From Iphione sp. A-MEVVRFRX5 (Eukaryota): DNA of 64,000 bases. The stretch is from contig OZ320313.1 in assembly GCA_976226885.1 (NCBI GenBank), positions 121,396,001 to 121,460,000 of the forward strand. The letters are read 5' to 3'. The notes beneath the pieces are model-generated. The model had not been told where the DNA came from, did not search any database, and was given only the letters and a program-made list of their open reading frames with translations. The position numbers and the translations under genes are program-made. This document shows positions 50,841-61,400 of the stretch, piece by piece; within the stretch, counting starts at the first letter, position 1, and every line of letters starts with the position of its first letter.

Positions 50841-52945
50841 CCTGTGAACCAGTCAGTCCCTAAAGTCTCCATACTGTTGGTTTAGAGTGGTGTCTATACA
50901 CCGTCGCATGTTTCTTAGAGGCCAGGGACTCTGGTGCCTGTCGAAGGAAACTAACCTGCCGTGGAGGTTAATCCTATTGGACCAGCCTCGTCCCAGAGCA
51001 GACAAGTCGCTTCATATTAGTTAAGACCCTTGCTATCTCATTGGAATCTCCCGCCAAGCGCAATGTACAGGTTACATAAACCGCTCTCACAACGTGCCTG
51101 ACCTTTAGGATGTGCTAAGTTGGTTTCCACCGCCAGTGAAATTTACCAGTATTCCTCAATCCTCTCTGATGAAATACTGTCTTGGTCAAGGTGTTGGAGT
51201 GAGGGTGTAACACCGCCAAGTTGATTGATATATATATGTATATAGATTGATTGACTATTACACACAATAACTTGGGACACGAGGGTCGACGTTTGTGGAT
51301 GTCATTCATTAGCAGGAGGTTTTTCAAAGTTAGCTTTACTCGTATATAAACCTGTTGGGAAGGACTCAATGGTAAAGTCCCGTCTGATGGATATCCTTTA
51401 CTTTTTGATTTTACAATTTCAAATTTCTATTTAACCCATCGCTGAACATTGAAAAATCATCGTTGTTAGTACATATTATTCAAATTGGTTTATATGGTTT
51501 AGATTCCTATGGTATCATCTCGATGATTATAAACAATAAATAAAAAACTCTTTGTACTGGTTCAAATTAAAATTGAGGGATTTTAGTGCTGTCAGGGATC
51601 AAAGACAACTCCTGTCAAGCCTCCCCGTGATGGGTCAATTCAGTTTTGCAAATAAATCTGTTATCAAGTGACAGATTATACCAATTCTATCCAAGCTATT
51701 GTGCTCCTCTACATATGAGTTTTTTGTCATGAAACGAAACCTCATTAGACACGAACCTCAGATAAACTGGACCCTGGCCCTTTGAAACCTCTAATGTTAG
51801 ACAATACAAAGACCGTGGTTATTTTACCAGGCTTTCGGTATACGGCCTGCAAGGAAACGGACTCCGTACGTTAAAGATGTCATCCTCCTGAACCACCTAA
51901 ACCTTGTATCGCGCAGACCTTGTCGATATACACTACTCTGTGCGAGGGGCTTACCTTATTAGACGTGATCAGCCAGGCATCTGCTGACAGATGAAGCCAG
52001 ACTTACTCTTTGCAACGAAACGGGTATGCAATAAACCCTTCTTCTGTTCATTTATAACTTATCAGTATCACGTTCTCAGAAAGAGTGAGCCCTTGTTGCT
52101 TGCTGACTATCTTCTTTGATGTCAACTTAGTGAATTGAGAGCTTAAGCTTTTGGGGTATGGTAAACACCAAAGTAAGAAGTGAAGAGAGCAACGTCTACG
52201 TTTCCGCCACCTTCCAAATCCATGTCCAGACTTTCGTTTATTGTTAACAGGATACGCAAATGGGGAGGAAAACGCACGGAGGACCTGTTGTCGTATAAAA
52301 GCTTGTTATAGAAGAAGTGTTTGTACAACGCGATTCATGAAACTAAAAAAAATATACGGAAAGAGCTGAATCGCCGATTTATTAACACCTGGAGATGTTA
52401 CTCCCAAGAAGTCAGATAATACAAAGTAATGATGTCAGCTCTGGGCTAAATCGTCCTTGTTGAAAAGTTACCTGAATTTAAAGATGATTCATTGTACGAC
52501 GTCTAAAGGATCTTTACGTGTACATATACATGTACATATTCATGTTCAGCCTAGGTGCAGGCTGGTTTGTCCGGCGAACAGCCTGTCTGCATTTCTTTTT
52601 TTTTTTTTTAGAACTTTATTTACACTGGAATGTTACAGATATTATCCATGTAGTCCAGTTTGCTTCGTGATACTCCATAGGCATGATGGTATATACAGAC
52701 GATATGAGATGATTACTATTTTTATGGTAATGTGAATGATGAGATGGGTATAATACTAAAGACAATTGTCTTCTCAGCTATCGATTTCTCTCCTGTGATG
52801 GCTCGTGAACGTATGTATGTCTCTTATGCAGCGGCAGTGTATTTTTAAATTTTGTTGTGGATGTTCAGCTAGATCAGGTGTAGAGTGTGACTTTACTTGG
52901 CAGTTTTTATCTCTTTAGAGAGGAAATCTTCCTTCAGATGTTCGT

Positions 52946-53077
52946 GCTAGGGTATCACCCTGCCATGGGTGTTTAGTAGTTATTCCTATCTCTATTTATT
53001 ACTGATTTGCTGGGGTATCACCCCGCATTTCTGTTATACTCAAATTATTGGATCGAGTTGCTAGGGTATCACCCTGC
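52946..53077 (-). repeat. Three 18-bp hairpin-forming repeats in the LINE 3' UTR
   Basis: gctagggtatcaccctgc (52946-52963, 53060-53077) and gctggggtatcaccccgc (53009-53026), on + strand coordinates. Confidence 0.9.
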
Positions 53078-53081
53078 GTGT

Positions 53082-55889
53082 CTATGGTATACGTTGATTT
53101 GCTTTGTAGATACACTGCCGCCGCTTTGACTTCAACAGTTTTCTAAACTCTTTAGTGGGAAGGTTTGTTTGATCAGATGTGATAATATCGTACCATAATC
53201 GGTTGAATCTGTATAATATTGATCTTCTAAAGCCTTCTTTCCTGGGCATTGGGTCTGCAACTGTTTGTCTCTTTAGTGTTTGCCTTGTCATGGCTCGTCT
53301 GCCTTCATCATTGTTCTCTGGTTCAGCAACTTTTTTCAACAATGTAGCATGTCCCAGTCTTAATAGTGGTATTTCAATCATTGCTTTTATCTCTCCCATT
53401 ATATCCTGGCGATTTATGTCCCTTAGCCAGACTGTTTCATAGATACGTTTTCTAAGTGTTACATATTTCTTGAAGTCTTTTGTGGGGCTTGTGTTCACTA
53501 GTACAAGGCCATACTCAATAACGGGGAGCAACATGCTACGTACAATTGTTAATGCCAGGTCTGCTTTAATGTACTTTCTGATTTTCTTCAGGTGTCTTAG
53601 TTTTAGGTAGCCCCTGGTGGTCAGGCTCCTCAGATGCGCATCCATCTTTAGTTTGTCATCAAGAATAACTCCAAGGTAGTTGAATTGGCGTACATGCATT
53701 AGGTCCTGGCCATTATAATTGAGTTTCACTTTTTGTGACACCTGTCCATAGCTGAAGTTCATGACCTTCGTTTTCTTGATGTTTACTTTGATCTTGTTAT
53801 TACATGCCCATTTGTAGAGCTCATCCAACCCTTGTTGTGCAGCCACCGCACAGGATGCCGCGTTCCTACCACTACTAATTAAGACCAGGTCGTCTGCATA
53901 CATTACACACTGGCAAGATGTTATATGCGTTGGGAGGTCATTGACATACAGAGTGAAGAGCAGGGGGCCAAGAATAGACCCTTGTGGCACTCCACAACGC
54001 ACTGACTTCGTAACAGACTCTATGTCGTTTACAGCAGTTACCTGTGTCCTATCACTTAGGTAGTCAGTTAGCCAGGAATGAAACCTGCCAACGTTGTAGT
54101 CATACAGTTTTTTCAGAAGGATATCATGGCTGACACTGTCGAAAGCTTTCTCAAAGTCTATAAACGTGCAGGTCACCTTTAATCCTTGATTTAAGTCACA
54201 GTGTATCAGGTCAGTGAGTTTACCAATGGCCATGTCAGTCCCCTTGCCTGTGCGGAAACCAAATTGCGCTTCAGTGATCATTCCAGCTGTCTCCAAGTGG
54301 TGATATAACCTAGTGTGTACTAGCCTTTCAAGTACTTTGTTTGGATAGTTGAGTATGCTTATTGGACGATAGTTTCCGGGCTCATTTCTGTCACCTTTCT
54401 TGTGAATTGGTGTGACTCTGGATCTCTTGAAACTCAATGGAACTTTTGCTTGCGAGACTGATTTGTTGAAAAGGTTCCTGAAGAAATCAATCTTTTCAAT
54501 CATCAGGTTTCTGATATATGTCCCTTTTAGGATACTGATTCCACTAGTTTTAGAGCTATTGATGCTATTGATTGCGTCACGTAACTCTCGTACCGTAAAG
54601 TCTGCGTCGTTAATTTCTTGTTGGTGATTTTTTCTGACATGTACATATTGTTTGGTCATAGTCTCCAGGATTCGATCACCGACTGTCGTATAAAAATCGT
54701 TCAACTTGTCTGCAACTACAACGTCAGACAGTACCTTTCCCTGATCATCTGTCATAGTTATCTTGTCTCTAGTCGACGTTAGCCCAAGGTTTGTTTTAAT
54801 ACTGGACCAGTATTTTAATGGGTTGTCTTTTGCTTTCTGTATTTGCATGTGTATGTAGTTGGCTTTAGCAGTGACAAGTGATTTGCGCACATTCCTCATT
54901 GCGAGTCTATACATCAGCTTAGTTTCAGGATTGGGGTTATTTTCAGCTGCCCGTCTCTTACAGTTCCGGTCCCTGATTTTCTTTAGATGATCATCATCAA
55001 TCCATGTATTATTTATTGTCTTGCACTTACTGCTCTTCAGAGGACAGCGGATGTTCACCAACTCTTTGATGCTAGCTTCTATGATATACCAGACTTCATC
55101 CAGGTCGTAAGTGACCCCCAGTTTAGTCCAGTCAAGTTTATTCATTTGCACTAGGAAATCTTCCTGGCTCAGTGATTTTAGCGTTCTATACCAAGTCTGC
55201 CTGGCCCTATTCGTCTGTTGTGATGTCTTTAGGATAGTCCTTGTCATTTTATGGTCACTATAATGTATGTCTACAACATCCACTTCTGTTTCAGTCACCT
55301 TACTATTCGTCAATACTAGGTCGATTAGGGTTGCACTAGAGTGTGTGACTCTCGTGTGTCCTTTTACCAGCTGTGATAACGAGTTTTTGATGCAAAACTC
55401 TGTTAGTGATGCAGTGTACGTATTTTCCTGCTTTGCCCAATCGATATTAAAGTCACCGCATATCACAACACACCTCTGTTTGTATCTGGATATAACATCC
55501 AGGTCACTCTGTAGTACGTCTAGAAAACATTCAACACTTCCTCGAGGTGGACGGTATAGTGTACATATGTGCTTGACGCTGTTACCCAGTGTGATTTTAA
55601 GCCATGTGCGTTCTAGATCATCCGTTATCTTGCTCAGATTCTCCAGTACCTCAGTGGTATCTCCTATCTTACTTGATATGTATATCATTAACCCTCCACC
55701 CCGCTTGCTTGTACGGTCTAGTCGTATTAGTCTGTAGCCTGGTATTTCAAATAGGGCCGAATTAATTCCTTCTTGTAACCACGTTTCTGTAACTAAATAT
55801 ATATCCCCTAAGTCTCTTTTTACTGTTATCAAGAATTCTTCCCAGTTTTTACTTAGGCTGCGTATATTGAGACAGAAAATACTAGTCAT
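53082..55889 (-). CDS. LINE ORF2: apurinic-like endonuclease plus reverse transcriptase, 935 aa, uninterrupted
   Basis: APE motifs LNIRSL, ETWL, GDFNID, IDLVLTN, SDH. RT motifs NYRPISIL, QFGFR, DFEKAFDSV, GVPQGSILGPLLFTLYVNDL, YADD, YLGVILD. C-terminal SILYRFNRLW resembles L2/Crack ends. Confidence 0.97.
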   Translation of the reverse strand: MTSIFCLNIRSLSKNWEEFLITVKRDLGDIYLVTETWLQEGINSALFEIPGYRLIRLDRTSKRGGGLMIYISSKIGDTTEVLENLSKITDDLERTWLKITLGNSVKHICTLYRPPRGSVECFLDVLQSDLDVISRYKQRCVVICGDFNIDWAKQENTYTASLTEFCIKNSLSQLVKGHTRVTHSSATLIDLVLTNSKVTETEVDVVDIHYSDHKMTRTILKTSQQTNRARQTWYRTLKSLSQEDFLVQMNKLDWTKLGVTYDLDEVWYIIEASIKELVNIRCPLKSSKCKTINNTWIDDDHLKKIRDRNCKRRAAENNPNPETKLMYRLAMRNVRKSLVTAKANYIHMQIQKAKDNPLKYWSSIKTNLGLTSTRDKITMTDDQGKVLSDVVVADKLNDFYTTVGDRILETMTKQYVHVRKNHQQEINDADFTVRELRDAINSINSSKTSGISILKGTYIRNLMIEKIDFFRNLFNKSVSQAKVPLSFKRSRVTPIHKKGDRNEPGNYRPISILNYPNKVLERLVHTRLYHHLETAGMITEAQFGFRTGKGTDMAIGKLTDLIHCDLNQGLKVTCTFIDFEKAFDSVSHDILLKKLYDYNVGRFHSWLTDYLSDRTQVTAVNDIESVTKSVRCGVPQGSILGPLLFTLYVNDLPTHITSCQCVMYADDLVLISSGRNAASCAVAAQQGLDELYKWACNNKIKVNIKKTKVMNFSYGQVSQKVKLNYNGQDLMHVRQFNYLGVILDDKLKMDAHLRSLTTRGYLKLRHLKKIRKYIKADLALTIVRSMLLPVIEYGLVLVNTSPTKDFKKYVTLRKRIYETVWLRDINRQDIMGEIKAMIEIPLLRLGHATLLKKVAEPENNDEGRRAMTRQTLKRQTVADPMPRKEGFRRSILYRFNRLWYDIITSDQTNLPTKEFRKLLKSKRRQCIYKANQRIP

Positions 55890-56268
55890 TTGGTATTCGC
55901 ATCACTGTCCACATTTTCAGGAGTAGTTTCATAGTATTATGTAGGTATACATGGATGAGCATGAGGTCACATGAACTGTACAAAATGAAAAAGACTGATT
56001 GTGTTGATAATAATGGAGTTGATGATATTTTAAGTAAGGATGGCATACGTGTTTTTTTTGTTTCCCCAAACAGGCATGAGGTACATACAAGTTTATTCTA
56101 GTCATATCTCTTCACACGACACATTTCTGGTTGCTAGTAGTGATTTTGCTAGGTCACCGACCTGCACACCGAGAGGCTATAGAGGGTAAGTGCATGCAAA
56201 ATAATAACAGACAGGGTCAATTCAATTCATGTAGGGTATTCAGATTATTACTTATCTGCGTCAGACGG

Positions 56269-56973
56269 CTACATCCAGTACAAGTCCTGTTCTGATTCCA
56301 AGAGTCGGATCAGCGCTCCCTCAAGTTGTCGTACCGCTACCGGCAGCCATTGTGATCGCAGGTGGCACCCATCTCGTAGCCTGACATATCTGTGCCGCCA
56401 ACGGTTGTGATTCCTACTGTGGATCACCGACATCGTCCATGGTACTGGGAATCCATTGACTATGTTGTATTCCACAATGAAACGGTTGATCCGGACCACC
56501 ACCTCGTTCAGCCTTGATTGTATGGCGATCGCACGGCCCCCTCTGTTAAGGTATCCATTGAGGCGGTGATTTGAGGTAGCATAATCCGAGCCAAAAATCG
56601 TCGACAGCATTATATAACTTCCTGGGAATCTGTCCCGTAGCATAGTGGTGGCATCTCGATAGTCGCTCCTCATTGCATCTAATGTCTCATTGACATCATG
56701 ATATCTCAGGGTGACGTAGCGAGCACCTTCTTCAGCTGTACCTGGGCGATGCATTTCTGTAATGTCATTGCCGCCACACCATAGTACCACAGCTCACGGC
56801 CATTCCCCACGATAGTCGCGGCATGCTCGGCGGGTTATGTTCATGATACGACCCCCAGGGTAGAAAAGCACTGTAACTGCAAATCTCCGATCAGTAAATA
56901 AATGCCTGGTGTTTCTACCATGACTGCTGCACAATACTAGCACACGTCGTCTGTATCCCACAGGTTGATTCAT
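56269..56973 (-). CDS. SGNH/GDSL-family esterase ORF of the LINE (234 aa, one in-frame TGA at 56794-56796)
   Basis: Manual translation from the ATG at 56973: MNQPVGYRRRVLVLCSSHGRN (block I Ser), FYPGGRI (block II), WP*AVVLWCGGND (block III), DGCH (block V). The ORF track shows only the part after the stop. Confidence 0.85.
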
Positions 56974-57017
56974 TTTGGCCGGTTCAGAATAGTGAACGTT
57001 CTGTGCACTTTTGGTTT

Positions 57018-58424
57018 TCAGGAAGATTCGGTCATTACTATGTCACATGACTGTTTCTGGTTCTGGTCATGTGACTCTTCACTTGACTGGGCCGTTTGTT
57101 GCGTCAGTGCTCGCAGGTCACGCCTGATTTCTTCCAATACCCGGCCCATTGTGTTCTTCCCTTTATAGGTACCCTCTGTTATTTCCTTAGCATGTAGGTC
57201 GACACCAGCTCCCCAGTACGCGTCTTTTGTGGCCTGTACTATTATTTTAGTGCCGCTGGCCTCAAGTTGATCTCTGAGCGACTGATTCTGTGTAAATTTG
57301 TGATACAATATGTCTTTCATTACTGCCCTTCGGTCTTCTTCCCATGTTTTTGCCGGAGTCATCTTTTTTCTTATCCTGACCAGTTCATGGGTGTCATCCG
57401 TCTTTTCAATTATTGATGCTAATAGGTCGTCACCCTTTTTTGCTGCTTTCGCCCAGCACAGTGCCTGCTCACCAGAGGTAAACGCGGTCTCACACCATGT
57501 GAATCCGGATTTCGTCATGTTCGAGAAGGGTGCCCCTTCTCCACTGAATACTATCCTCTGTTCATCATCAATCTGTCTGGCCGAAGCTAGACTGTACTCA
57601 CACGGTACTTTATGTAGCTCATTTTGATTATACCAGACATTGTCTATCTCTATTTTGGTTTCTCTCAGTTTTACTGTCTTTGTCGGGGCCTTTTGCTTTA
57701 CTTGTCGCGCAACTGTTTGGAGGTTTACTCATGTTCTCTTTTCTTCTTGTGATTCGTCACAATTTATCCAAATTTTCTTTCCCTTGAGACCCTTTTTAGC
57801 AGCAATTACCTTCTCCTTAGCCGCCAATCGGGAGAATCTGACAAATAGGCCCCTTACTCCATCATTATTCTTACGCGCCGTGCGGTATGCAATATCAATA
57901 TCACTTTCAGCAATGGAGACACCTATCGTTGCAAACAATCCCAGCGCCATGCCTACAGCTGTCTCCCCTTCTATTTCTGCTAGACCATCAATGAATATAT
58001 TGTACTTGCGATGGTTCTTGTCAAGTATCCGATTCTCCTTTTTTAGCCTATCAATATCGGGATGAGTGACGGACATTGTTGCTTTCGCTATCACCTCAGC
58101 CTTCAACTTTTTGTTCTGTTCCTTAAGGTTATCAACCTCGTCCTCAAGCTTCTTAATTTTGACTGTATGTTCGCTTACTAGCTGTACGGTAGTTTTCAGT
58201 AGTGTGCTCATACCTTTGATTTCATCTTTGATGGACATTGACAACTCCCGTTGTTCCTCTGTGTTTTTTCGTAATTCGGTCAGCACGGTGTTTATTGTCG
58301 GCTCCTGGTCTTCACCTTCTGTACTTCCACCTCGTAGGCGTTTCCTGGAGCTGGACCTTTTTCGTTCATGATCACCAGGTGTGCATAAATCACGATTATT
58401 CCTGACCTTTTCACTGGCAGACAT
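57018..58424 (-). CDS. LINE ORF1: L1-type coiled-coil/RRM/CTD fused to a C-terminal NADAR (YbiA-like) domain (468 aa, one in-frame TGA at 57729-57731)
   Basis: Track ORFs 57729-58424 and 57018-57518 share a frame, and the 70 codons between them are open (VNLQTVARQVK...RIVFSGEGAPFSN). ORF1 motifs: heptad coiled coil, RKYNIFIDGLAE, IDIAYR, FVRF, IWINCD. NADAR motifs: FSGEGAPFSN, FTSGEQALCWAK, W..DR..VM..IL..KFTQN..L, QATKDAYWGAG, GKNTMGRVLEEIR. Confidence 0.88.
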
Positions 58425-61400
58425 GTTTGGAACAGGCCAAAATAGCGTTCATAGACGGCCAGTGTTGTCGGTGTGCGTTTAAGCTTGAACGCGGTGTAGT
58501 TATGTAATCACCGTAACCGTCACCGCCAGTCTGTAGGTGGTGGTTGTGTCCGTTGTGACTGTTCTCAGATCGTTTCCCGTTTATTCCCTGCCGGAGTTTC
58601 TTTCCTAGTATACTCCATATATTCCCTGTGGTTAGTTGCTATTATTCTTCCATGTTCGTGTTATTAATTCCAGGTTGTGCTCATGATTGTTCGGGAAAAG
58701 TGGAGAGCGCTTCACCACACGTCCGCGCCCCACGCCGCCATTCTGTCTCTTCCTTTCTTGTCATTATGGAGGGATGCGACAGTTCATGATTGATATTAGA
58801 ATTCTTGGCTGCTCCACCATAGTTGGATCTGTGCACTTTGTTTGGTACACAGAGTTTATCACATTATCATTCCCATTGTACAGTGTTTGATGAACATCGG
58901 TGTAATTGACATTCCAACCATTACTAGAGCCAAGAGAGAGCTTAGTGAGCAAAAGTAGGAGCTGGTAGTAAATCAACCATGAACCAATTCAGTGAGGCCA
59001 ATATCCAGGATCATTCTGCAAATCGGATTATAATTGATACAGGAGAATGCAATCTGGTGGGCTAGCATCATTTCTGCGCAGCCACACCAGTCATCTCAAA
59101 TATGTATTTGCAAAGCGTGCACAGGGTGTACAGGTAGAAAAGGGACCCCCGTGATGCAAGATCAATGGATGCAGCGATTAAACCGAAGGGGGCGCTACTG
59201 GGTCGGTGTTGGCCTTGAAGCAATGGCGGGGCGCCCCCTAGCCGCCCATTGTGTGGAATATGTCAGCTATTGTGGCCAGTCTCTCATTGCCAGAGGCTCC
59301 CTGTCGTGTCACCCTTCCTCGCCATATTGGTATCTGGCCGATCCGTACGCGGTAAACATGATTTAGGGGCCAAATTGCGAAATGGTTTGTCACTCAATAA
59401 AGGTTAAGAATCAGTACAGGGAGACTAGAGTTTGTCATGGTGTATTCCAGTAGTTCGACTCTATATATAATTTGCGTAACGTTCCATTATATGATTATCT
59501 TGTTTGGCGGCACATGTTTCTACCGCGAGGAATGAAGTCACTTTTGACCAGCCCAGAATTTTTCGCCGAAGAATGAGGGTGGTAGGGGGAGTTGAGGAAG
59601 GTATAGGAGAAAATTCATAGAGCATTTTAAGTGCCAAGTCCGTTTATCAGAATAAACGAAACGGTGATAATTAATAAAGCACCCTTTTAAAACAGTATAT
59701 CCGACTCCCTTGTGATCCATGTGAATATTACCGTCTTGCTCTCCATCCCCCTCATGACTTTCACAGATGCATTATCTATGTAATGTTCGCTGTGATCCAA
59801 CCATGCCTGAAGGGGACGGTTGGCGAGACAGAGAAGATACTGTTACCTGTTTGGTATTACGGCCACAATGATCCAAATATGAAGCGGTTTCATTGCATCT
59901 AAACTCCACCTCGTGTCAAGTGGATTCTCATCGTATAATCTTTTGTACCTAGCTTTTACTGTCATTTCAAAATCACCATGGTTTCTGCTTTTTGTAGTGT
60001 GTGTGCTATTTGTCCGGCTGTATTTGCCGGGTCGAATGCTTCCCTCTAACAATAAGCCTGGCACTGTGGAAAACCGCCCGTTAAAAATTAACGAGAATGT
60101 CCTGAAGATTGGTGACCGCGCGGTAGACCAGCTTGGCTACTTCGACGAACTCGCTGCCACCGTCTGCCTTACATGGAACCCACCAAAGGAAAAGAACAGA
60201 AAGAAACAGCTATGTGCAGAAACTGCTGTCTGTTTACACAGGACCAGCTGGTCTGGCCTGTGGCAACCACAAATAGAAAATGAAGCTCCTCTTCATGTGA
60301 TAGCAGACTTATGTAAATAAGCACATTCATGTCATCCCAGGTCTGTATTGTGTACTCGATTAGTACCCTAGTTCCCATACATCCCCCTCCTCCCGCCTTC
60401 GATTCTCCATGGGGCTAGGACAGGGCTATTTTTATGCTGGTGGGTGCATCCATCAAAGAGCGCCCAACCGATCATGTTACTATCTACATAGGCTGAGACC
60501 GGTGCGCTTTACCAATTCGGTTGGAAATCCGGAGATTAACTACCTCGTGTCGAGCACCCGGCTGCCTTGTTCCCGTCATGATCGACATGGTCGAGACCCT
60601 GTAATACACGGTAGCCACCTGGGTTAATGACGCAGTATTCAGTATCAAGTTCCATCGACACGCAATCTATGGTGGAGCGCGGGATCTCCACAGTCCGAGT
60701 TTAGCCAAAGCGCCAGCCACTTAACCGACAACTCTAATACACACCCCCCTAACCCAGCGCAGCAGCTCCAGATGAGCTATGCTTGTGATTATCCTGGCGA
60801 GATATTAAACACTCATTATTGACCCAAGGACTATCATATTATGGCTAAACGTTAATCTTGGCTCAAAAAGAAACTCGTCAATTGGGATTTAGGTGATCCC
60901 CGGTGTAACTTTATTCCCAGTAACAAGTGCGTTCATGCTACAGTAACAGTATGCCGCCTCAGATTAATCGATTCGTTTCTTGAGAATATCGACAGATTGA
61001 TAAGTTAGAGGAGAGGGGATGTCAAAGAAGGTGACCGTGTCCACCAACTAGGAATAGACAATGGTCTCACCACGTTTGCTTTCGGATCATTGCCGCACGT
61101 CTCAGATCAGCTGCAGACACCCAAAACGCTTTGCTGAGTTGGGATTGGCAGGCTACGGTGTTTTGCTTATCATGGTAAATGAACGAACGGTCCAGGAATA
61201 AATAGTTTAGTTATACTAATCAACCGCAGTCCTTAAGGCTATCCACTTCCTTCCCAACTTATACTGAGCCGACTGCCCCAGTACTTCCCCTGGGCACAAC
61301 GCAAAATCTGTACTCCACAACACAAAATCTGTAATCCAATGTTAATCCATCTTAACACGGATAAGTCACGAACCATTAAAATAGCTATTTGGGATTTATT

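Follow-up and report, generated by a model that had tools for sequence, protein, structure and literature searches.

The window, that is, the whole stretch of 64,000 nucleotides analysed here, carries on its minus strand a dead copy of a LINE whose ORF1, similar in predicted structure to the L1-type ORF1 protein (ORF1p), is fused in frame to a NADAR domain. The best overall explanation of this arrangement, which we favour tentatively and with somewhat less than even confidence, is that the NADAR of the element would be borne on the RNP and would erase base-linked ADP-ribose. The fusion itself, as comparison with other copies and other assemblies shows, is old, widespread and kept by selection. 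To our knowledge, accessory enzyme domains of LINE ORF1 are rare and none of them has a clear role.

The translation of the minus strand from 58424 to 57018 gives 231 codons, one TGA, 236 further codons and a stop. The features of the element are the following:

52596..58741, minus strand: whole LINE copy, comprising 5' UTR, ORF1-NADAR, esterase-like ORF, APE-RT ORF2, 3' UTR, AATAAA and poly(A), as delimited by alignment to a sister copy
58425..58741, minus strand: 5' UTR, between the start of similarity to the sister copy and the ATG of ORF1
57732..58424, minus strand: the 231 codons of ORF1 that precede the premature stop, with basic N-terminus, coiled coil, RRM and start of the CTD
about 58295..58008, minus strand: coiled coil, placed from the model of the sister copy
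about 58004..57759, minus strand: RRM, placed from the model of the sister copy and Foldseek
57579..57758, minus strand: CTD of L1-type ORF1p, codons 223-282, interrupted by the TGA and recognised by a conserved block and by Foldseek (2ldy)
57729..57731, minus strand: in-frame TGA, codon 232, inside the CTD and private to the window copy
57105..57578, minus strand: NADAR domain, codons 283-440 (Pfam match 57533..57111)
57468..57470, minus strand: Glu equivalent to E43 of the P. nicotianae NADAR, Glu in 46 of 49 family members
57447..57449, minus strand: Lys equivalent to K50, Lys or Arg in 49 of 49
57234..57236, minus strand: Gln (CAG) at the hallmark Glu of the YbiA family, equivalent to E125, by alignment to 8bau
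57018..57020, minus strand: stop codon of ORF1-NADAR, from the translation
56269..56973, minus strand: esterase-like (SGNH-type) middle ORF, with a weak Pfam Lipase_GDSL_2 match and the blocks CSSHG, GGNDI and DGCH in its translation
56796-56794, minus strand: in-frame TGA of the esterase ORF
53082..55889, minus strand: ORF2, apurinic-type endonuclease and reverse transcriptase by Pfam, 935 aa, open in the window copy
52596..52620, minus strand: AATAAA signal (52620..52615) and A14 tail (52609..52596)

The downstream part of the fused frame matches the Pfam NADAR profile (PF08719) with E=1.5e-24 and 87.5 bits (cut-off 35.1) over profile positions 11-163 of 163, and the match is therefore not a chance one. 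Moreover, phmmer searches with this region found YbiA (2b3w) and a NADAR of solved structure (8bau), and the motifs E-x6-K (GEQALCWAK), KFTQN, D-x-x-WGAG and GKNTMG are all present. For the fold, an AF2 model (pLDDT 79) was made from the intact sister copy, which is 94% identical. The top Foldseek matches of this model were 8bau (E 4e-8, TM 0.72) and 2b3w (TM 0.74), both with the YbiA-like alpha+beta fold, followed by the human L1 ORF1p trimer (2yko/2ykp/2ykq, E 2e-6). The sequence-only reading had described, without naming the strand, an L1-type ORF1 that runs in one frame, past a single TGA, into a NADAR domain with the motifs E-x6-K, KFxQN, D-x-x-WGxG and GxNxxG; the translation, the profile and the sister model agree with it, and the profile search and structure prediction which it had proposed as checks both came out in its favour.

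The architecture of the upstream part is best seen in the same model, where long helices (residues 44-116 and 122-139) are followed by the strands and helices of an RRM (142-222), and where the RRM 2w7a, the RRM-CTD 2ldy and 2yko were all matched with probability 1.00. A coiled coil N-terminal to the RRM is supported by the model helices, by weak coiled-coil Pfam matches and by the trimer chains of 2yko, and the CTD contains the conserved block IWxNxDES..ER..R..L..VA..VK...P.K.V+LR..KIEID..WY. Residues 44-282 of the model share the three-domain order and the fold of human LINE-1 ORF1p (PDB 2yko). The Pfam search of ORF1 gave no match for the RRM and CTD, and none to Transposase_22 (PF02994) at E<0.1; the likeness to Type II ORF1p is, as far as the model indicates, structural only. 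Type II proteins (coiled coil, RRM, CTD) are also found in the CR1, L2 and R1 clades (PMC4120745), from which the present ORF1 differs in the appended enzyme domain of 160 residues and in having no Transposase_22 match.

The TGA that interrupts the CTD is a recent break in the window copy. At its position 26 of 26 aligned copies encode a basic residue, which is invariant, and the sister frame is open. Programmed readthrough or recoding was considered and rejected, since all the other copies have a sense codon and the window copy is broken a second time, by a stop in its esterase ORF. With premature stops in both ORF1 and the esterase ORF, the window copy is a dead element.

The whole element carries three ORFs, namely ORF1-NADAR, the esterase-like ORF and APE-RT. 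From window position 58741 onward it can be aligned collinearly, at 90% identity, to the sister copy, which lies on the same chromosome, and both copies end at the same point, with AATAAAGTT followed by poly(A) and divergence beyond; for a target-site duplication there is only a weak, degenerate candidate. As in APE-type LINEs, there is a downstream ORF with APE endonuclease and reverse transcriptase, a defined tailed 3' end, and a dispersal of copies over many chromosomes. ORF2 matches RVT_1 (1.5e-42), Exo_endo_phos_2 (2e-12) and Exo_endo_phos (7e-7) in Pfam; among solved structures it matched R2 at 1e-12, and human L1 ORF2p was not matched. In relatives of the element, as in CR1/L2 elements, a PHD finger is found at the N-terminus. 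These indirect hints (solved-structure matches and PHD fingers) may point away from a Tx1 or L1 affiliation. The middle ORF recurs outside this genome: an unrelated public contig has a homologue of it (33% identity, E 1e-24) downstream of ORF1-NADAR.

The sequence-only reading knew of no description of NADAR in LINE ORF1, and the novelty thereby suggested was overstated: a single paragraph of a 2025 paper (PMC12477816, Genome Biol) notes NADAR in ORF1 proteins of LINEs of the Pacific oyster classified as Tx1 in Repbase. These LINEs share with the present element a YbiA-family NADAR inside the ORF1 of a lophotrochozoan-type invertebrate; the element described here would be set apart, to judge from the published description, by its ORF2 of 935 aa, its PHD-bearing relatives and its separate esterase-like ORF. 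The oyster account contains none of the analyses of selection, structure, residues and copy number that are given here. An earlier catalogue of ORF1 domains (CC, RRM, CTD, CCHC, PHD, esterase, zinc finger/leucine zipper) is without NADAR (PMC4120745). The esterase-type (Type IV) ORF1 of CR1/L2 likewise has a hydrolase fold as a LINE accessory module (PMC3905857, PMC4120745), but that esterase sits in ORF1, whereas the SGNH-like esterase of the present element is a separate middle ORF, and NADAR is unrelated to it in fold and chemistry. Furthermore, a Gypsy lineage of Ectocarpus has independently captured a YbiA-type NADAR (PMC12477816), although the carrier there is an LTR element whose NADAR forms the N-terminal part of Pol and does not sit in an RNA-coating protein, and the closest relatives of that NADAR are bacterial.

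At least 150 loci with ORF1-NADAR are present in the genome (150/150 of those scored, at E<=1e-29, from 4444 first-look candidates), and their number probably runs into the thousands. A tandem array of copies was observed on one chromosome (C22). In all of the 49 other copies examined (L002-L030 and L044-L063) the NADAR domain ends a long open frame, the CC-RRM-CTD of two copies missed by BLAST having been recognised by eye; ORF1 and NADAR have therefore not been separated in any of them, in agreement with the earlier claim. In intact relatives ORF1 is a single protein of about 450-470 aa. The identities of the ORF1 part and of the NADAR part to the window copy are correlated (Spearman 0.83), and these comparisons indicate that the two halves co-diverge and that the fusion is ancestral. 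The dN/dS of the NADAR region, also proposed earlier as a check, lies well below 1: it is 0.10 between the window and sister copies (20.5 synonymous against 8.5 non-synonymous changes; Fisher p=8e-9), 0.05 for the pair L017-L023 and 0.02 for L013-L017, values which show the domain to be under purifying selection.

The fusion is also found outside this genome. An exhaustive profile search of public assemblies gave 612 representative proteins at E<=1e-30, and most of the best 150 span the whole profile; two fusions in public contigs have a LINE context, with an adjoining esterase homologue or APE-RT ORF2. The nearest ESM Atlas clusters are NADAR proteins of 415-489 aa from annelid records. A word-index protein search returned only two distant matches for the whole fusion and no matches for the NADAR region alone.

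As regards the active site, the residues that contact ADP-ribose in the P. nicotianae NADAR (8bau) and E. coli YbiA (2b3w), that is, Glu-x6-Lys, Trp, Arg, Asp and Trp, align with the present domain, although the identity is about 23% and both the fusion to an RNA-binding protein and the hallmark Gln are features of the element described here. E43 of the P. nicotianae enzyme contacts the distal ribose, and K50 contacts the phosphate and is essential in E. coli C7 NADAR (PMC11543638). The equivalents of W89 and W133 are Trp in 49 of 49 relatives, and the position of D130 is occupied by His or Asn in many of them. The ADP-ribose-contacting residues are kept in most lineages. The Gln at the Glu of the EAS motif was correctly seen in the sequence-only reading, but it is a trait of a subfamily of two copies, the window copy and its sister, and 40 of 49 relatives have Glu there; the YbiA hallmark is absent from the window copy and present at the family level. 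Since replacement of the equivalent residue (Asp) by Ala or Asn abolishes activity in a bacterial NADAR (PMC11543638), the domain of the window copy may lack hydrolase activity.

The favoured explanation may be set out as follows. ORF1p would coat the element RNA, probably as a coiled-coil multimer, and would place NADAR domains on the RNP, where ADP-ribose would be released from a nucleobase (guanine N2 or cytidine) by hydrolysis of the N-glycosidic bond. [quoted passage not shown] Such removal of ADP-ribose from nucleic acids would be consistent with published YbiA-type activity: a eukaryotic YbiA-type NADAR strips ADP-ribose from guanine in DNA (PMC11543638), and cytidine-linked ADP-ribose is removed by NADARs that include a sponge enzyme and YbiA-type proteins, ScARP being able to modify both DNA and RNA (PMC12945103). 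Annelid and bivalve picornavirus polyproteins contain NADAR, for which de-ADP-ribosylation of macromolecules has been proposed (PMC9503650). In these positive-strand RNA viruses, as here, an ADP-ribose-processing domain is part of a replication/packaging protein of an RNA-based parasite; the viruses have RdRP, whereas the present carrier is a nuclear retrotransposon, and its cDNA and target DNA are further candidate substrates. On the side of the host, Pfam Enterotoxin_a and DarT transferases had no match in the genome, a result without bearing on their absence, as control genomes were equally silent.

The residues would fit a soluble substrate just as well, because E. coli YbiA acts on small molecules of the riboflavin pathway. 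NADAR might then destroy immune signals derived from NAD or ADP-ribose, or clear reactive N-glycosides, and protect the element indirectly. Membership of the YbiA family, as given by profile and fold, agrees with this, riboflavin intermediates being the characterised substrates of YbiA (PMC11543638), and the favoured substrates of phage NADARs are soluble ADP-ribose derivatives (PMC9503650). We nevertheless regard it as unlikely: an enzyme tethered to an RNA-coating protein fits better with a substrate borne on the RNP, the NADARs of animal RNA-virus polyproteins have been argued to target macromolecular adducts (PMC9503650), and the tested eukaryotic YbiA-type enzyme cleaves base-linked ADP-ribose.

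The Gln lineage raises a different alternative, to which we give about the same low probability, namely that the domain is mainly non-catalytic, either an ADP-ribose reader steering the RNP to PARP-marked breaks or nicks or a structural or solubility part of ORF1p, with catalysis dispensable and repeatedly lost. The NADAR of this lineage remained under selection (dN/dS 0.10) after the change from Glu to Gln, so the domain may bind ADP-ribose without cleaving it, or its catalytic arrangement may have shifted. The E125-equivalent Glu is absent from 9 of the 49 relatives and the E43-equivalent Glu from 3, the framework of Trp, Lys and Gly being invariant; given these losses, the Gln found here and the inactive bacterial mutants, catalysis may not be the selected property. 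Against this, the hallmark Glu persists in 40 of 49 very divergent copies (down to 33% identity) and the other Glu in 46, which argues for catalysis as the ancestral, selected state, and some of the exceptions without Glu are single decayed copies.

It seems less probable still that NADAR processes the RNA ends of the element. It would then take off a cap derived from NAD, or an ADP-ribose-phosphate left over from RNA repair or ligation, and so make the transcript fit for translation or for use as template. Gene context first tied NADAR to RNA-repair and KptA/2'-phosphotransferase pathways (PMC9503650), and processing of RNA intermediates has been suggested for the NADARs of Ectocarpus Gypsy and oyster LINEs (PMC12477816); however, such activity has been demonstrated for no NADAR in the literature examined, and no sequence feature points specifically to it. 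Finally, an accidental juxtaposition, in which a host NADAR exon or unrelated fragment lies beside a LINE ORF1 in a coincidental frame, is hardly credible and was rejected, for nothing except the interrupting TGA speaks for it, whereas the other copies (49/49) have the same domain order in one open frame, hundreds of full-length fusions occur in other assemblies and the halves diverge together.

Taken alone, the window locus has modest value, as a single dead copy of a fusion already noted in print in 2025. More broadly, it is conceivable, though we think it rather doubtful, that invertebrate LINEs of a large and ancient group carry, on the protein that coats their RNA, an active nucleobase-ADP-ribose eraser, that base ADP-ribosylation by the host is a defence against retroelements, and that some lineages, the present one among them, have turned the domain into a non-cleaving binder. 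If this were true, hosts would ADP-ribosylate RNA or DNA bases against retroelements, for instance by pierisin/CARP-1-like or PARP-type transferases. The biochemical means are at hand, in the form of NADAR assays and of oligonucleotides modified by ScARP or DarT1, and the natural Glu and Gln variants offer ready comparisons. That hundreds of lineages have kept NADAR, under selection, on the protein which forms the RNP suggests that nucleic-acid ADP-ribose chemistry matters in the life cycle of invertebrate retrotransposons, and ORF1-NADAR opens the concrete question of whether retroelement RNA or DNA is tagged with ADP-ribose in animals.

The ORF1-NADAR fusion at this locus is real and well preserved. 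It belongs to a dead LINE copy with three ORFs (the window copy), whose reading frames are the following.

Reading frames of the window copy
58424..57018, minus strand: ORF1-NADAR, translated as 231 codons up to a single TGA (57731-57729), then 236 codons to the final stop
56269..56973, minus strand: esterase-like ORF, with a weak GDSL match and the SGNH-type blocks CSSHG, GGNDI and DGCH
56796-56794, minus strand: in-frame TGA of the esterase-like ORF in the window copy; in the sister copy this point is open and the break lies elsewhere
53082..55889, minus strand: ORF2, 935 aa, APE endonuclease and reverse transcriptase (RVT_1 1.5e-42)

The part of the first frame that follows the TGA matches the Pfam NADAR family (PF08719) at E=1.5e-24 and 87.5 bits, the curated cut-off being 35.1 bits, over nearly the whole profile, and a sequence-only search of solved structures with it returned E. 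coli YbiA (2b3w, 1e-5) and the P. nicotianae NADAR (8bau). The ORF1 part before the TGA matched no Pfam family, giving weak coiled-coil matches only. The fold was predicted for the intact protein (466 aa) of the sister copy, the nearest relative of the window copy, the input alignment consisting of 25 genomic copies. The model has a mean pLDDT of 79, with predicted disorder (pLDDT <50) at residues 1-41 and 462-466, a lower-confidence linker at 111-120 (block mean 58) and values above 70 in the remainder. In a Foldseek search of the PDB, 8bau, which contains ADP-ribose, ranked first (E 4e-8, TM 0.72 on the target), followed by YbiA 2b3w (TM 0.74), nine chains of human LINE-1 ORF1p trimers (2yko, 2ykp, 2ykq; E 2e-6 to 4e-5) and, in the last ranks, the RRM-CTD construct 2ldy and the RRM 2w7a. 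The order of coiled coil, RRM, CTD and NADAR proposed in the sequence-only reading is correct.

The esterase-like ORF, which lies between ORF1-NADAR and ORF2 and is separate from both, and the APE-RT ORF2, downstream on the same strand, establish the LINE context. Similarity between the window and sister copies begins at 58741 and continues across all three ORFs; both terminate at the same point, with AATAAAGTT and poly(A) (A14 in the window copy, 52609-52596), beyond which the sequences diverge. The only candidate target-site duplication of the window copy is weak and degenerate. Decay is complementary: the window copy has stops in ORF1 and the esterase-like ORF and an open ORF2, while the sister keeps ORF1-NADAR open but has a broken esterase ORF and an ORF2 divided between two frames (L042:6756-9561, the sister locus). 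Both copies are dead. As regards the clade, ORF2 matched R2 proteins at 1e-12 among solved structures, human L1 ORF2p not being among the matches, and among its relatives in the databases, at about 25-31% identity, are proteins whose N-terminus has a PHD finger, a feature of CR1/L2 elements, in which L1-type ORF1 has also been recorded (PMC4120745). On these grounds, assignment of the element to the Tx1 type is doubtful.

When the NADAR part was compared with the 1.18-Gb genome in all six frames, 4444 first-look candidates emerged, and the 150 of them that were scored all matched at E<=1.3e-29, the majority in open frames of 430-700 aa. Of the 29 other loci that scored best, 28 have matches to both parts of the fusion in one stop-free frame, as do 18 of 20 more distant ones (33-48% identity; BLAST). 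One of the two loci missed by BLAST was read by eye and has the coiled coil, RRM motif, CTD block and NADAR; the other is a near-duplicate frame. In an alignment of 27 sequences, the TGA of ORF1 falls at a position where the residue is invariantly basic, and all other copies have a sense codon there, among them the sister, whose frame is open and which shares 92% nucleotide and 94% protein identity with the window copy at a distance of 61.7 Mb on the same chromosome. These two form a subfamily of their own, the next relative being 74% identical. The TGA is private to the window copy. Some copies depart from the common layout: in a sub-lineage with frames of ~700 aa (L052:717-2825 and L054:740-2869), a low-complexity N-terminal extension of ~300 residues precedes the four domains. 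Furthermore, outside the window, five NADAR-bearing open frames of 415 aa lie on one chromosome at a spacing of about 2.06 kb, with two adjacent pairs at about 4.1 kb (G000:C22:817849-830862); this series looks more like a tandem array than dispersed LINE copies, and may represent either a cluster of host genes or a piece of an element amplified in tandem.

The NADAR codons of the window and sister copies differ by 20.5 synonymous and 8.5 non-synonymous changes (dN 0.024, dS 0.234, dN/dS 0.10; Fisher p=8e-9), which answers the question of selection in favour of purifying constraint; for the coiled coil and RRM part the ratio is 0.06. Synonymous sites are saturated in most pairs, so that the measure is limited to close ones: two further pairs gave 0.05 (L017-L023) and 0.02 (L013-L017), and one very close pair, with nine changes, a non-significant 0.36. 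Moreover, the identities of the NADAR and ORF1 halves to the window copy are correlated among 46 copies (Spearman 0.83), as expected under long joint inheritance. The fusion is of ancient origin, occurs in abundance and is kept under selection.

When a profile of the 25 copies was compared with 1.84 billion representative proteins, 612 matched at E<=1e-30. Of the best 150, the majority have lengths of 400-700 aa and align to the profile as a single block between positions ~40 and 445, thus over the full fusion. The nearest ESM Atlas clusters are NADAR proteins of 415-489 aa, and the few taxon records are annelid. In an unrelated public Logan contig (L064), the ORF after the ORF1-NADAR match is homologous to the esterase-like one (33% identity, E 1e-24), and in a 338-kb ENA contig (ERZ26222911, L065) another such match is directly followed by a homologous APE-RT ORF2 (E 2e-85; 1042 aa, L065:6001-10815). 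Since no esterase ORF was called between them there, it is no constant companion of the fusion. Among the public proteins, P0123 (4240 aa), P0126 (1580 aa), P0127 (1075 aa) and P0217 (2914 aa) each have 3-7 separate NADAR-matching stretches, and thus tandem NADAR repeats, and in P0001 (657 aa) CTD and NADAR are followed by a Gln/Ser/Pro-rich tail of ~450 residues, so that this module is elaborated in another way at its C-terminus.

NADAR has been described in Pol of an Ectocarpus Gypsy lineage and, in the Pacific oyster, a YbiA-family NADAR in the Repbase ORF1 of several Tx1 LINE families, with a possible role in processing RNA intermediates (PMC12477816, Genome Biology 2025). A literature search for NADAR or DUF1768 tied to LINE ORF1 found nothing besides this paper, and a survey of ORF1 domains does not give NADAR among them (PMC4120745). 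The fusion is of a barely described kind, with one printed mention and otherwise unstudied.

In the P. nicotianae enzyme, ADP-ribose is contacted by E43, K50, R79, W89, R93, E125, D130 and W133; a bacterial NADAR needs the equivalents of E43, K50 and E125, the last of these being the YbiA subfamily's hallmark (PMC11543638). Equivalent positions were taken from a HMMER alignment to 8bau and a family alignment of 50 sequences.

Residues equivalent to ADP-ribose contacts in 49 relatives of the window copy
E43: Glu in 46 of 49
K50: Lys or Arg in 49 of 49
W89: Trp in 49 of 49
R93: Arg or Lys in 44 of 49
E125: Glu in 40 of 49
D130: Asp in 19, His in 21, Asn in 7
W133: Trp in 49 of 49

The Gln that had been noticed in place of the usual Glu is real (CAG, 57236-57234, minus strand) but lineage-specific, being confined at the E125 position to the window copy and its sister. 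The change is older than their split, with the NADAR remaining under purifying selection afterwards, and in this lineage the domain may be either a non-cleaving binder or an enzyme of altered mechanism.

As to the mode of action, which we infer, a eukaryotic YbiA-type NADAR is known to act on DNA that DarT1 or ScARP, an enzyme of the pierisin family, has modified, stripping the ADP-ribose from guanine N2 (PMC11543638). Cytidine is freed of ADP-ribose by NADARs among which are YbiA-type proteins and an enzyme from a sponge, and ScARP has both DNA and RNA as substrates (PMC12945103). The clam CARP-1, as cited in PMC11543638, makes the same guanine adduct. Furthermore, picornavirus polyproteins of annelids and bivalves contain NADAR, for which removal of host ADP-ribose marks has been proposed (PMC9503650). 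Rival readings are that the LINE-borne domain acts on a soluble substrate, that it is a non-catalytic reader or has a structural role, or that it processes RNA ends. The most economical reading is that the domain serves the LINE as an eraser of base ADP-ribosylation: ORF1p would bind element RNA through the RRM and CTD and multimerise through the coiled coil, like L1 ORF1p, so that each RNP would then bear many NADAR domains, which may erase the modification on element RNA, cDNA or the target site.
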